From the NCBI RefSeq assembly GCF_963853765.1, contig NC_088854.1:24304001-24368000 (forward strand): 64,000 nucleotides of DNA, given 5' to 3'. Both the position numbers and the translations under genes were made by a program. Positions within the stretch are counted from its first letter, which is position 1. The number at the start of each line of letters is the position of its first letter. Below are positions 14,769-21,816 of the stretch, piece after piece. The notes under the pieces are model-generated. The model searched no databases, was not told the origin of the DNA, and saw only the letters and a list, made by a program, of their open reading frames with translations. The DNA is from Magallana gigas. Taxonomy: Eukaryota.

Positions 14769-15937
14769 TAATATATTAATTAAAAAAATAAAAATGAAAT
14801 AGAACATGCTGTATACAAAATGAAATACATGTAAAATAAATTTTCAAGGAAACTAAAGCATATTTTCATTATAGTAAAAATTTGTACTATGTTTTACAGT
14901 TCAATAATTAAGAACTTAATTTTTCAGTAGGTTTTCCCATACTAGTATCTTATAAGTATTTCAATTGTCAGCTCATAGCATTTAAATACTGTTGATATTT
15001 CAGCCAAAAAATAAATTGAAAACTGAATTAGAAGGCTTAAAGCTTTACTATATATTTAGATATGTATAATAGGTTGGCAATTTTGTACAAATGTATTAAG
15101 AAACTTTGCAAGTGTATGCTAATAATGTCACCTCAAAGGTACTCTCTAAACAAGGGAAACTTCAAAGGTAATAATATTCCACCAGACTTCTAATTTCATG
15201 TAAATAACATGTATTTTTGTGTATCTTATAAAAACTTTTATTTCTATAAATGGATATTTCTTTCTTCTAGGAAAAGAAAGATGAAGTCTAAAAAATGCAA
15301 TAAAAAAATATCACAATAAAACATTAATCAATGTTGCATTTTGCATTTGGTGACTTTAAGTGAATCTTCTGTGATACATCCTGATCATAACATGCTATTT
15401 GATTGGCTAAAAAAATCTAAACTAAATAAAATATAAGGCTTGACAATATAACAATGTTACTTCAATTAAATACATGTGTACACTTATATATTTGGCACTT
15501 TGAATGACAGGATTTTATACAATTTATTGTAATTTGTGAGGACAAATTATGCCATATTTTGTGAACTCAAATATAAATGTGGAAAAGTAGATAAAATTCT
15601 GTCCCTTTCACATTTTCACTGGACTAAGATTAATTTTTGCAGTACCAGTACTTGCCAGCACATAGTTTTGCTAATGACATTTCATTGCAAGGGCAAGAAC
15701 TTATGGTATAACCATACATGTATATGGTGAGAATTAATTTAAGGCCAAAATAGTAGCAAAATCTACCAGGCAAGTTTAAACAGTTTTTGTATTCAATAAA
15801 TTCCTGATTAATGTAAATATTCAAACATTGCATGCAGAGAACAAAGAAAAATACATGATTGCACAGATATGTGACTGTTGGTAAAATGACTGATATGATC
15901 AAATTTGCAATGGAGGGCATCTTATCTCTGGCCTCAC

Positions 15938-18107
15938 TTACAGCTTGGAGTGGGGCCGAACACTCACACTGCGGCCATTTCTGCTGATCTTGATGGCAAC
16001 TTCCAATCCTTTGCAGATCTGGTCTAGAACATGGAACGGTACAGACTTGTTGACTGGCAAGTACACAACGTGGTCTATAAGATAGCGAGCCTCATGGGGG
16101 TAGTAATGAATCAGGGGGGCAAAGTAGTCCAGGTGGGGGTTCCACTTCTCTGGTTCAATTATGTTCAACTGCGTGGCGCCTCGATATGCATCAATGCCCA
16201 TGGCATTCAAAATCTTGACTATAGTATCAGGATTTTCCTATGAATAGAAACATACTGTTTTATATGCCACAACTACCAGGTATACTTATTGTATTGGTTC
16301 TCATGTCCCCCTACATTAGATCAACTGCTGCAGCATTGAGTTATTTCATTGCAATATTTATCTTGCAAAAAAATTGTTTTCCTTATTAATTTTATCTTGC
16401 TTGAAAATTAAAAGATTAATGAAATTGCTATACTAACCACTAATATAGGGTAAAGCCAGTAATTGTTTACTGAACACTCTCCCCCTACCAGTGTCACACA
16501 GTCTGGCAGCCGCTCACGGACATACTCTCCCTTTATATTTGACGTTTTGAACTCCGCTGGCTTGAAGTTTTTGAGTCTGTGTAGTAGGGTATACAGAAGG
16601 GCAGCAGACGGCTGTTGGCGAATTCGGAGAACCATGTCACTTGGAAAACCCCTCAACATTTTTATAACGTATTGTTTGTGGTCTATATTGAGTGTCCGTG
16701 TGAGCCACATGGCTGGTTTGACCACTTGAGGACAGTCCAATAGCAAGTATACCAGAAAATATTTGGTCAACTTCTTGAAATATTCCCGCTGCTTTTGCAC
16801 AGGATATGCAGAGTTTCGTCTTGACATTTTCTCATATAATTCATCATCCCTGATTTTTGCTATAGCACCACCGAAGGCTGTTGAAGGTTTAATCACACCA
16901 AAACTAAAAAGAGCTAAATCTGTCCGCGGGTTTCCTAACCAATCAAATCCACAGAAAGACTCGGCACAATCCTCTATAACGAATATATTGCGTTCCCGGG
17001 CAATGTCTATTATGCTATCCATCTCTACTAACTTTCCGTATATATGAGCTACTAATATAGCTACTGTTCTGTCTGTTATAAGGTGCTTCAGCTGATCTAG
17101 CTTGGGACTCGTTCTCTCTATATCCACATCCCATGGAACAACCTTGTCACAATTTTAAAAAAGATTTTATATTATTTTTGCTGAGTGGTTTGGTATTGAC
17201 ATTATTTCTATTAAACAAAAATGAAACATTGTTTTTGGTAAATGATGAAAACAACTTATAAATCAATTAAAAATAGCTTCAGCATGAATACTTCCTGCTT
17301 GGCAGAATTTACAAATATGTATTCTGTCTAATTTTTTTAAAATATATCTACTCAGTCTTATCCACTGGCTGTGAGGGGGATAACTCTTTTATTTATCCAA
17401 TGACTGGGTCCATTTCTGTAGGAATTTCCTGGGGAAATGGTCCATATCAAGGGTTTGATGAAAGAGCCTCATGTATCCTCTACTCATATTCAGTGAATAA
17501 TTTTTATATAATGCATTCAATCATTGTCTAATGAATTGAGAAACAGATCAAAATAGCATTAAACTAATCATATATTTGAAACACAGTATTTGATCTAAAA
17601 GAATCATACAAATTATCTTTCGATAATTCAATGAAGTTATTATGGATATCTTCTGAAAAGAGTGTCAACATAGAGAAATCACCACCCATTATCAAGGCAC
17701 AGGAAATTTTTACCAGGTACACATGTAATGTAAGAATCCAATTGTGAAAATGGTTTAAATTTTATCTGACAGAAGTCAGTGGAAATATAAATGTACTATA
17801 ATGGCAATGTCAAATGTTTGACTATGTGTGCCTTATTTCTGTGTATGTACCTTCAGTCCGTGGTGTTTAATGATGTATACCATGTCTGGAATATTGATGG
17901 CAGACATAATGACCTCTGACCCTGGAGGATAATTTTTCACTTGTAAAAACAAGTCTAAACCAGTTCTAACTGACAGGCAAGGGAGTACACAGTTCTGATT
18001 GGTTGGAGTGGTCCACATCTGTTTCAGCTCTTGGACTGCTTGTTCTCTGTTGCCACAACATTTCAGGCACCGTGATGCTGCTCCAAAAATGTCTGCAAAT
18101 TCTGCAT
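15938..18107 (-). CDS. DegT/DnrJ/EryC1/StrS-family PLP-dependent aminotransferase-like protein with C-terminal SKL; 5' exon(s) not resolved
   Basis: Exons 18107-17851, 17142-16438 and 16237-15938 join in phase via GT-AG introns (at least 420 aa). Family motifs: SVRTGLDLFL, PPGSEVIMSAINIP, VVPWDVD, AILVAHIYG, VIEDCAES (PLP-binding Asp), FSFGVIKPSTAFGGA (Schiff-base Lys position), YWLYP, GID, YLPV. Ends PHSKL-stop. The first recognised exon starts in phase 1, so the start codon lies further upstream. Confidence 0.88.
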
Positions 18108-20230
18108 CTAGTTAAAAAAAAAGAAGGATGAAAAATAACCCAACTTGCTTACCACATTAAAAAGAAATTATAGATTTTATTCCCCCATTGAAGAAAAAAG
18201 TTTGATTTTGGTTCCAGGGAGCAAATGATCTTTATAGTATACACTATGTACATTTTTTTCAGAGTTTGAATCTTTTATTGTTAAAGTTATTCAAAACACA
18301 TCTACTGGTACACATCATGCAAGCTTTTAAATTCATCATTTGAATAATAAAACACAAATATTTTAAAACCTCTCCATTTAAATTCATTTGTCAATTTGAG
18401 ACATGAAATGGTTGTTTGAGCACATAAATCTGTGCTAAAAGTGTAACGCAAATCAATACATTTCTGCTGGTTAAAACAATCCACATACCAATGTATACAC
18501 ACGTGTAAGGCAAAATAGAACTGGCAGATTTATCTCTGAAAGCCATTATAGGTTTTGTCTTTTTCCTTGGTTTCAGCCAGTTCCTGAATTCAATGATAAA
18601 AAAAATAGCAGGTTAAGTTAAAATTTGAATGAAAATGATTCTCTTTCAAACTACACAAACTATAGTATTTTGCTATGTTAATATAAATCATAGAAATGTA
18701 CATACAAAAGGCTTACCAGGTAAATAATTGATATTAAAGCTTAACTGGGGTGGAGAAACTGATTAAATTATGCAGGGGTATCCTGCATCAATTATAACAA
18801 TATATGGTTTTCCATGCACCACGGAGTAATATAGGTTTTCCTTTACGTACATAGTTATTTACCAAGTCATGGTAGTGAAATTACTTTGAATTGTTACTCA
18901 AAAGCACTGTTTAGATAGATATTAGACAGTAGGATATAGTATTCATTGCAACAACTCATGTCAAACTGCACTGTGAAATTGTCATAATAAACACAAAGCT
19001 TTTGCCTATTGGGAATTACCAGTACTGCTACATTTATATTTTCCCCAACAAACACAGATAGACAGTAAGTGTGCGATTAGCTTCATCACATGTACATATG
19101 CACATCTGCTATAATTCATTCAGAGTACTCAAGTACTCATGCAAAAGCATTACTGATAAGTAGCTTCAAGTTGGCAACTATTTCAATCCACAGTTATGTC
19201 ATTATTTTGAATGTCTAAAAAAATGTGTTGTGTTAATTAAGATTTAGTTAGGTTAGTTGTTGTTCTCTTTGTAAAAACTTTCACTCTGGACAAAATAAGC
19301 TAGTACCTCCACGATTTTCTGAACTGCCAAGATGTAAATTTAATGTTTTTTTGTTGTTAATGGAACAAAGCAACTTGCTACACATGTACTTTATGTGTCA
19401 TGTGGTTTATCTAAGAACTTAGCTGAGTGTTCTCATAAATGTTCAATTTTAAATGATGAGTCAAATACAATATACATGCTGCATTTTCATATACAATATA
19501 CATCTACAAAGTATCTAGTATTATCTTGGTACACATCATCTTCCCAAGTTAAGGGTTTCTGATCCACACCTCTCCTCACAAAGAGGGGAGCAGAGTGCAC
19601 AAAATGCCCTTGGCTAGCAAACTTTAAGATGGGTACACATGTACATATTATGTTGAATATATCACAACTTCATTGCTACTTATTTGGTGGAGTATGTTTC
19701 ACATTATACTGGTACTAAATGTTTGGTATTATTATACTGCATGCTATATAATGCCTCTAAACTTGTGGTTAGTGCATGCATGTACTTAATTCACAACCGG
19801 CATTTTACATTTTTCTCTCAACTATTTCCCAAAATTCTAAAATACTAGTATGATGTCAGTAATTCAGATGACATAAAAAACAATTATTGTTGCAAATGTA
19901 AAAATAATTCATAAAAAAAAATTACTATTTAATAAGATATTTCAATTGTAATTAAAACATAGAACAGTTTCAGAGTTACTATAGATATCTGCCAAAGAAG
20001 ACCCTTTAAAGGCAAAAAGTAATGCCATAAGTTCGCAATAACATGACAGCATTTTTTTTTTTAAGGTTAAGGAAGTAACTTTCTTATCATATAATATGCA
20101 AATAGCTTTTTGGGAGAAAATGACATTTATTGAGCAAACTACTTTAAACACATTATGCCGGAATATGTAAATTGAAGAGCAGAAGAGCTGAAATACATGT
20201 ATCTACAACAGTTATGATGTAACAGGTTTT

Positions 20231-20973
20231 TTTGTTATACTTTCATGTTAAATACTGAAATCTGATTGGTTAAGACGAAGTTCATAATCTGTTCTATTAC
20301 CCTCAGCGTTAGCAACGCACTTAGCAACGGGTAACATTAAAAAATGTTACATGCGCGAAAATTATGCGCGTACGGTTTGCTGTAGAATTCACGTTATTCC
20401 TATATAAAAGCAGTAAAATTTTCTTAAAAATTAAGACATTCAGTATTATATAAATAGTGCCTGTTTGGGAGGGTAACAGTTGAAATTGACACCCCGAGAA
20501 AACCATTGTCAACCGACGCGAAGCGGAGGTTGACAATGGTTTTCGAGGGGTGTCAATTTCAACTGTTATCCTCCCAAACAGGCACTATTTATTTTGTTAT
20601 ACTGAATGTCTTTTTTAAAATTTTTAAGAAAATTTTACTGCTTTTATATAGGAATAACGTGAATTCTACAGCGAACCGTACGCGCATAATTTTCGCGCAT
20701 GTAACATTTTTTAATGTTACCCGTTGCCAAGTGCGTTGCTAACGCTGAGGGTAATAGTATTTATTATTAACTGCGTCTTAACCAATCAGATTTCAGTATT
20801 TAACATGAAAGTATAACAAAACAAAATAAATAGTGCCTGTTTGGGAGGATAACAGTTGATATTGACACCCCTCGAAAACCATTGTCAACCTCCGCTTCGT
20901 GTCGGTTGACAATGGTTTTCTCGGGGTGTCAATTTCAACTGTTACCCTCCCAAACAGGCACTATTTATATAAT
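20231..20973. mobile_element. Palindromic/hairpin non-autonomous element (about 590-bp palindrome plus an inverted second copy of its central hairpin)
   Basis: 20231-20820 reads as an inverted repeat (tttgttatactttcatgttaaatactgaaatctgattgg ... ccaatcagatttcagtatttaacatgaaagtataacaaa) centred on ccgacgcgaagcggag (20513-20528). 20812-20973 is the reverse complement of the inner module about 20446-20600. Confidence 0.8.
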
Positions 20974-20975
20974 AT

Positions 20976-20979
<4 letters not shown>

Positions 20980-21022
<43 letters not shown>

Positions 21023-21049
21023 CTTTCTCTCTCTCTTTCTCTCTCTCTC
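20980..21049. repeat. (CT)n microsatellite, imperfect
   Basis: CT run directly abutting the hairpin element. Confidence 0.95.
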
Positions 21050-21816
21050 CACTTACCAACAACATTTGACAGAACTGCTCTACTAGCTGTTGTTTACCAT
21101 CTCCAATATATTTTCAGGGATCACTGAAAAAGATACTACATAATTTATATTCTGGTTCTTTGCCTCACACATGAATTGGCAATGTCAAAATTAAAGGTCT
21201 TTAATGTATAATGTCATCTACTTTATATACTCATCCAGGGTATAGCAGCTTTTCTGCAACAACGGTAACAAATATACATTTTTTTTCACAATTAAGTTGT
21301 CAGAAGTACATTTAAAGATATAGATCAAAATAGAATAAAAAAAAACTCAGTAGAGTTATGCCTGAACTTACACCAACGGCATATAATTAATCTTTTTTAA
21401 GTGGCATTGTTTCACTTACAATAAAAATAATCTTTGAGATATGTTATATAACATACAAAATTATCACAGTGATGCATAAATATATATACATAATACATGT
21501 ATAGGGACTGGATCAATAAACATTCTTTCAGGATATATACATGTACAGCCAGGTTATTTTTATGTTAAATCCTGATACATATTAATAATAGATTTTGATT
21601 AACGGTATCAATACAAATATTAAAAATGTTCTAAACATGCTCATAATTTTTTCCCCTAAATTTCCAGTAGAATTTCAACACATGTACCAGGTAATATATG
21701 TATATATCAAGCAAATAAAACCTCATTTAAAGAGGGAATGCAATACAAAACTATAAGAACTATAATGCACAGTACAATGTACTTGAATACTCAGTGCATG
21801 TAATAAACTGTAAGAG

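Follow-up and report, generated by a model that had tools for sequence, protein, structure and literature searches.

A 64,000-nucleotide stretch of the genome of the oyster Magallana gigas (assembly GCF_963853765.1, contig NC_088854.1, positions 24,304,001 to 24,368,000; hereafter the window) carries on its minus strand a spliced gene for a predicted pyridoxal phosphate (PLP)-dependent enzyme of the DegT/DnrJ family, which ends in the type 1 peroxisomal targeting signal (PTS1) SKL. We propose that the product is a peroxisomal DegT-type aminotransferase, most likely with an acceptor of the dihydroxyacetone phosphate (DHAP) type, and we give this reading as a whole a probability of about two in three. 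That the protein is a real peroxisome-targeted PLP aminotransferase can be held with good confidence from sequence comparison, and the DHAP-type substrate is put forward tentatively. What is new is that an enzyme family found mostly in prokaryotes includes an ancient eukaryotic subfamily tagged with PTS1.

The gene has five exons, four coding and one in the 5′ untranslated region (UTR), and its coding sequence (18546..15938) comprises 1320 nt after splicing, that is, 439 codons and a TAA stop, with every intron bounded by GT and AG. Over 15000–19500, RNA contigs from two oyster runs and polyA reads from another two gave exactly three junctions between coding exons (Table 1), and their strandedness fits a minus-strand mRNA. 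A sequence-only reading of the window had described a spliced gene with a PLP-binding Asp in EDCAES, a Lys motif (FSFGVIKPSTAFGG) and a PHSKL-stop end, all of which were found: the middle exon encodes Asp163 (codon 16971..16969) and Lys190 (FSFGVIK, codon 16890..16888), and the open reading frame (ORF) closes with the SKL codons 15949..15941 and TAA at 15940..15938. The span that it gave, 15938–18107, covers the last three coding exons and misses both the exon with the start codon (ATG at 18546) and the 5′ UTR exon. Because the RNA contigs pass from the SKL stop into the 3′ UTR, no alternative last exon is in use, and the possibility of a different transcript end, also raised there, falls away. 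The gene-model protein is colinear with P0114, a 439-residue assembly of 310 member sequences from public runs; the two differ by 11 substitutions (97.5% identity) without any insertion or deletion, and the N-terminus (MAFRDK...) is identical in both. The 564-Mb genome (29 contigs) holds a single DegT-family locus.

Membership of the DegT/DnrJ family, which had been proposed from motifs, was borne out by profile search. The middle exon alone matched Pfam PF01041 (DegT_DnrJ_EryC1) with 71.8 bits (E 8e-20) and full-length P0114 with 94.6 bits, the gathering threshold being 19.8; the match spans only profile positions 44–214, the large PLP domain, and the C-terminal domain is not recognised. The class V signal (Aminotran_5) was marginal, with E 0.32 in exon B and no match at E<=0.01 for full-length P0114. 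The AlphaFold model, built with a 56-sequence alignment, had a predicted local distance difference test score (pLDDT) of 92 and a predicted template modelling (TM) score of 0.91, and only residues 1–4 and 430–439 were disordered (tail pLDDT <50). The best 50 Foldseek matches in the PDB were all DegT-family structures, with ArnB, perosamine synthase and WecE on top (TM 0.6–0.78, E ~1e-18, 15–21% identity), and the best PDB matches by sequence were perosamine synthase, a Helicobacter aminotransferase and inosose aminotransferases (~1e-15, or 1e-32 with the family profile). As in the DegT sugar aminotransferases (ArnB, GDP-perosamine synthase, WecE, PseC, BtrR), a fold-type-I two-domain architecture is combined with a Schiff-base Lys in SF-x-x-x-K and an Asp of the EDxA motif facing the pyridine nitrogen. 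Lys190 aligns with the catalytic Lys of the SFFGNK motif of perosamine synthase, and R67, D110, E162, D163, S185, F186 and K190 are invariant in the 56-sequence alignment, Lys190 and Asp163 being kept in the canonical DegT outgroup too. In the dehydratases of the family (ColD/E1), His replaces this Lys; since Lys190 is kept, an aminotransferase rather than a dehydratase is predicted. Unlike the sugar aminotransferases, the oyster protein is eukaryotic, intron-bearing and PTS1-tagged, and is only 16–21% identical to them over structural alignments. Judged by these residues and profiles, it is an apparently intact enzyme of the DegT superfamily that lies outside every characterised subfamily.

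The name sugar-aminotransferase-like, given to the protein earlier, is right as to the superfamily and may mislead as to the function: the protein matches no characterised nucleotide-sugar equivalog and falls in a separate subfamily with its own signature. A classical sugar or cyclitol aminotransferase, which would act on a nucleoside diphosphate-4-keto-6-deoxy-sugar or on scyllo-inosose and supply amino sugar to a glycan or metabolite of invertebrates, would agree with the closest structures and profiles (perosamine synthase, ArnB, BtrR and related inosose aminotransferases, WecE), with automatic database names (ArnB-like, GDP-perosamine-synthase-like, glutamine:scyllo-inosose aminotransferase-like) and with the retained catalytic Lys and Asp. 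However, none of seven NCBIfam sugar-aminotransferase equivalog models (ArnB, PseC, WecE, DesI, LegC and RfbH among them) reached its cut-off, the scores being 39–56 bits against cut-offs of 375–650 (best ArnB, 55.7 against 631). Canonical active-site positions are also replaced: Gly-Thr has become Val66-Arg67, the His of SFH is Gly187, and the Glu of EGG is Gly196 (EGG to F/LGG). These belong to a signature common to the animal proteins and a bacterial sister clade and absent from canonical DegT proteins (V66, R67, D71, H102, G187, G196, R269, P283, W334), of which Arg269 is extra and Pro283 lies in an insert relative to canonical DegT. In addition, this is the sole DegT-family gene in the genome, the bacterial relatives stand outside glycan clusters, and we know of no nucleotide-sugar pathway in peroxisomes. 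We regard this explanation as rather improbable.

The targeting signal was scored on 93 eukaryotic matches, reduced to 55 with the conserved C-terminal VYLPV motif and a tail of 25–110 residues. A strict PTS1 ([SAC][KRH][LM]) ends 48 of these 55 full-length homologues (SKL 37, AKL 8, SRL 2, ARL 1) and a relaxed one ends 51, compared with a strict PTS1 in just 1 of 123 bacterial relatives; the orthologues thus carry the signal on which the sequence-only reading had relied. The four without it are the tunicates Ciona and Clavelina, one unnamed protein whose N-terminus resembles that of tunicates, and a single model of Branchiostoma belcheri, whose congeners end in PSKL. Many more representatives of the eukaryotic clade end in a PTS1, other PTS1-ending representatives are from an oomycete, a centipede, a basal nematode and a sea spider, and across cnidarians, lophotrochozoans, ecdysozoans, deuterostomes and protists the residues directly before the tripeptide vary freely. 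Selection has clearly maintained the C-terminal tripeptide, and since it is so frequent in eukaryotes and so rare in bacteria, peroxisomal import is strongly implied.

The SKL might still fail to target peroxisomes in vivo, leaving the enzyme cytosolic or dual-localised, and the tunicate orthologues and an echinoderm paralogue, which have been retained without a PTS1, speak for this. We consider it improbable, as the tripeptide is kept while its neighbours change, disorder and exposure are predicted for the tail, and the eukaryotic proteins have no N-terminal extension relative to their bacterial relatives. The echinoderm proteins in question (P0313 of Antedon, P0322 and P0471 of Diadema, and P0335) form a well-supported second paralogue clade with N-terminal extensions, which suggests that this copy may be non-peroxisomal.

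The bacterial sister clade (Planctomycetota, Cyanobacteria, Chloroflexota and others) is 30–35% identical to the animal proteins over the full length. It joins the oyster protein in a clade with support 100 and shares its private active-site signature, and differs from it in the near absence of PTS1, in having no introns, and in that some members are fused or adjacent to oxidases and acyltransferases. A search for domain fusions had been suggested from the sequence, and such fusions were found. P0358 and P0368, each exactly 1000 residues long, join the DegT-like part to DAO and DAO_C, a part whose best NCBIfam match is glycerol-3-phosphate dehydrogenase/oxidase (E 2.5e-75); P0348, P0401 and P0410 carry a FAD_binding_4/ALO oxidase closest to DprE1 and sugar-lactone oxidases; and P0345 and P0283 carry a PlsC-type acyltransferase, at opposite ends in the two. 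The four fusions whose DNA was examined (P0358, P0368, P0345, P0410) are uninterrupted single ORFs. Separate genes are arranged in a similar manner: a PlsC-type acyltransferase, an Lgt homologue and then a DegT-like fusion form a tight same-strand array in L099; acyltransferase, DegT-like and GlpD-like genes stand in a row in a Thermomicrobiales metagenome-assembled genome (L086); in L100, genes for CdsA and a CDP-alcohol phosphatidyltransferase are found at a distance of 3 kb; and an oxidase gene lies 63 and 10 nt from the DegT-like gene in L061 and L040, respectively.

When all ORFs of 80 GTDB loci were clustered, no neighbour family occurred in more than 7 of the 80; two large clusters proved to be antisense shadow ORFs of the DegT-like gene itself and were set aside. 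In the betaproteobacterial loci L076, L022, L052 and L087, the flanks hold a TauD-family dioxygenase, a thiamine pyrophosphate-dependent enzyme, a GST and an enoyl-CoA hydratase, which look like synteny among close relatives and may alternatively hint at organosulfonate or amine metabolism. AhpC-type peroxiredoxin genes lie near bacterial homologues in 5 of the 80 loci, and P0438 of Chromera velia, an enzyme of the eukaryotic clade, carries a Redoxin/AhpC peroxiredoxin domain fused at its C-terminus; P0376 of Cardiosporidium cionae bears a peroxiredoxin annotation, and a DegT domain was the only one detected in it. A radical S-adenosylmethionine (radical-SAM) gene adjoins a DegT-like fusion in two metagenomic contigs that are unrelated to each other (Table 1).

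Considering the above results, we propose a plausible model for the oyster enzyme. The folded protein would be imported into the peroxisomal matrix by PEX5, where it would transaminate a carbonyl compound to an amine with an amino acid as donor. The acceptor would not be a nucleotide sugar; it may be a small C2-keto compound of the glycerol-phosphate type, that is, DHAP or its peroxisomal acyl or alkyl derivatives, and amination of such a compound would give products of the serinol-phosphate type. In the bacterial modules, an FAD oxidase would make a ketone from a secondary alcohol and might release H2O2 in doing so, the DegT-like enzyme would aminate the ketone, and the acyltransferase would then acylate the product. 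A glycerol-phosphate backbone, as DHAP or an acylated form, is suggested because genes of the glycerol-3-phosphate oxidase type and lipid genes occur with the sister clade, and carry-over of the substrate type from the bacterial to the animal clade is reasonable because the private active-site signature is common to both. Peroxisomes are the site of DHAP acylation and of its conversion to alkyl-DHAP. The acyl/alkyl-DHAP class of substrate, a speculation of the sequence-only reading, gains indirect support from the bacterial fusions and operons. PLP-dependent conversion of DHAP to serinol phosphate has been described for Cj1437 of the Campylobacter jejuni capsule (PMC11800397) and for RtxA's N-terminal domain in rhizobitoxine synthesis (PMC3222319); the chemistry is that proposed here, the likeness being one of published chemistry only, and these enzymes serve to decorate a polysaccharide and to make a toxin, outside any lipid or peroxisomal context. 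In its fullest form, the proposal is that invertebrates other than insects, and many protists, have an unrecognised peroxisomal amination at C2 of DHAP, acyl-DHAP or alkyl-DHAP leading to serinol-phosphate-type (2-amino-2-deoxyglycerol) metabolites or amide-linked glycerolipids, and that in the bacterial sister clade an oxidase-transaminase-acyltransferase module, in some cases a single polypeptide, carries out this same chemistry; in all its parts together, this is speculative and on balance unlikely.

Several observations weigh against a peroxisomal enzyme acting on DHAP-type compounds. The nearest solved structures, by sequence and by fold, are nucleotide-sugar and inosose aminotransferases, and identity of only ~30–35% between the animal and bacterial clades means that the substrate may have changed. 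Most bacterial members stand alone without a conserved neighbour, and fusions and operons (some 8 fusions and 5 adjacencies were observed) thus make up a minority; the GlpD-like fusion parts score 254 bits where the equivalog model asks for 360. As two unrelated kinds of oxidase occur in the fusions, the evidence speaks more strongly for an oxidase-made ketone in general than for DHAP in particular. Finally, the tunicate orthologues and the echinoderm paralogue end without a PTS1, and both localisation and activity are inferred for all members.

Other PLP chemistry, by a lyase or a decarboxylase, was also considered. Metazoan OvoB, the C-S lyase of ovothiol synthesis, has been reported not to be found outside Hydrozoa, and OvoA occurs widely among marine animals, whereas vertebrates, most arthropods and nematodes have lost it (PMC8433421), a distribution that broadly resembles that of the oyster clade, in which no hydrozoan was seen among the named matches. 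Cj1436, a PLP enzyme of the serinol/ethanolamine pathway reported to decarboxylate L-serine phosphate (PMC11800397), likewise offers a precedent for non-transaminase chemistry on a small phosphorylated substrate, here by a phospho-amino-acid decarboxylase. However, the case for OvoB depends solely on resemblance of profiles, its loss pattern being common to a great number of genes; the OvoB and EgtE enzymes that are known belong to class I/II or class V and are not DegT-like; and the bacterial fusions point to an oxidase-transaminase-acyltransferase logic rather than to a lyase. A search of the oyster genome gave three loci for PF03781 and none for PF12867, establishing no link with OvoA, and within 30 kb around the PF03781 locus C7 no minus-strand open segment with a PTS1 end was present. 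Such chemistry is, in our view, quite improbable.

The aminotransferase subfamily to which we assign the oyster protein is widely distributed. Word searches returned full-length homologues, nearly all named "uncharacterized", from bivalves, gastropods, cephalopods, nemerteans, annelids, amphioxus, echinoderms, hemichordates, tunicates, a tardigrade and anthozoan cnidarians, and 1078 proteins reached E<=1e-30 when a profile was run against 1.84 billion representatives. Further animals came from cluster look-ups, namely a sea urchin, a centipede, the basal nematode Romanomermis and a sea spider, together with Chromera, the apicomplexan Cardiosporidium, the oomycete Hyaloperonospora and protists of the MMETSP, Tara and EukProt collections. 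Orthologues are thus present in >10 animal phyla. No vertebrate, insect or rhabditid nematode occurred among the named matches, which are part of the match list, so that their absence is suggestive. The enzyme had been thought of as an invertebrate one, and this stands for many invertebrate phyla, some arthropods and a basal nematode included; it is too narrow in that alveolates, an oomycete and marine protists have it as well. Long eukaryotic homologues (P0124, P0130, P0160, P0183, P0310, P0311 and others) contain inserts or extensions and no second Pfam domain.

Maximum-likelihood trees, for which canonical DegT proteins served as the root, place the eukaryotic and bacterial members in one clade apart from canonical DegT (support 100), within which the eukaryotes form one clade (support 100 in one tree and 99 in a tree with 62 eukaryote rows). 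The animal part (support 99) tracks the species tree, with cnidarians first and then deuterostome groups, ecdysozoans and lophotrochozoans, and the oyster protein branches beside those of mussel and scallop. Two of the three coding introns are common to oyster and Nematostella: the first splits the Asp codon of a conserved ID pair after base 1 in both, and the last follows a conserved LV in phase 0; the middle one is absent in Nematostella. Because these positions and phases match, the two introns were already present in the cnidarian-bilaterian ancestor, and together with the order of the tree they indicate that descent within animals is vertical since before the cnidarian-bilaterian split. 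The question of horizontal transfer or vertical retention, which the sequence-only reading had left open, is thereby answered within animals, and the deep relation between bacterial and eukaryotic members is not settled, with a second PTS1 group that includes an oomycete appearing nearer to the bacteria. This separate group of PTS1-ending protist proteins (P0385 of Hyaloperonospora, P0359, P0394, P0403 and P0420, from oomycete, Tara and EukProt sources) could represent a second acquisition or an unresolved deep branch. Bacterial contamination or a recent lineage-specific transfer into oysters, which the bacterial type of the family and its nearest non-eukaryotic relatives in Planctomycetota, Cyanobacteria and Chloroflexota might suggest, is excluded by four RNA-confirmed spliceosomal introns (as the introns had earlier been taken to argue), by innexin neighbours on a chromosome-scale contig, by a composition that agrees with the AT-rich surroundings (GC ~0.30–0.40 in the window), by the phylogeny and by the intron positions of Nematostella.

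The exons of the oyster gene are listed in Table 1. The 3′ end of the 5′ UTR exon is fixed at 21057/21058, where the donor is GTAAGT, and the first 30 letters of the upstream contig portion map uniquely to 21058–21087. An in-frame TAG stands in this exon 63 nt upstream of the ATG with no ATG between, which fixes the start codon at 18546. The start-codon exon encodes residues 1–19 and the first base of Asp20, so the following intron is in phase 1. The 5′ UTR intron holds a palindromic or hairpin repeat at 20231–20973 and, immediately after its donor site, a (GA)n run at ~21040.

Table 1. Parts of the oyster gene (window coordinates) and the gene pairs with radical-SAM genes (positions on the loci named).
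Feature	Position	Strand	Evidence and remarks
5′ UTR exon	21058..21296	-	RNA contigs X1 and X2 extend 200–239 nt beyond 18584; upstream limit approximate
First intron (~2.47 kb), within 5′ UTR	18585..21057	-	RNA contigs
Start-codon exon	18489..18584 (upstream edge 18583/4)	-	ATG 18546..18544; RNA contigs
Coding exon, residues 20–105	17851..18107	-	Junction 18107/18489 in RNA contigs; carries LSVRTGLDL (Val66-Arg67)
Coding exon, residues 106–340, PLP core	16438..17142	-	Junctions 17142/17851 and 16438/16237 in RNA
Last coding exon, residues 341–439	15938..16237	-	RNA contigs continue through the exon into the 3′ UTR
3′ UTR	15492..15937, possibly to ~15018	-	Contig pieces and read depth; AATAAA at 15528 and 15242
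Radical-SAM and fusion pair, L099	8001–11003 with 11125–12882	-	
Radical-SAM and fusion pair, L101	876–2993 with 3127–4377	+	

Downstream of the gene lie two single-exon-looking innexin ORFs in opposite orientations, at 2401–3732 (plus strand, 443 aa; Pfam Innexin E 2e-66) and 7189–8409 (minus strand, 406 aa; E 1e-86). A 527-aa open frame without a Pfam match at 32744–34327 (minus strand) may be a low-complexity or repeat-rich exon, and the 2-kb stretch around it has a GC skew of -0.27 and an AT skew of -0.27. The only run of N in the window, at 43051–43181, is far from the gene.

Among known peroxisomal enzymes, alanine:glyoxylate aminotransferase (AGXT) is the classical PLP enzyme of fold type I imported through a C-terminal PTS1; it is of class V, a subfamily different from that of the oyster enzyme, and its substrate is presumably different. 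Our literature search turned up no established animal function for the oyster family, no paper describing the clade or linking DegT-type enzymes with peroxisomes, and none on serinol-type phospholipids made by a DegT-like subfamily. The patchy mitochondrial DegT of Andalucia (PMC7050145) belongs to a different group.

Inventories of peroxisomal enzymes come mostly from mammals, yeast and plants, lineages that we take to be without this gene. In most animal phyla and several protist lineages, a PLP enzyme with a PTS1 has persisted for >600 million years, and its retention implies a peroxisomal amination step that is absent from textbook accounts of peroxisome metabolism. If the substrate is DHAP or acyl- or alkyl-DHAP, this step would branch off from ether-lipid synthesis and lead to amino-glycerol lipids, and the animals concerned are famous for unusual ether- and phosphono-lipids. 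If a DHAP-type substrate is true, it would furthermore provide a function for >1000 uncharacterised bacterial proteins as well.

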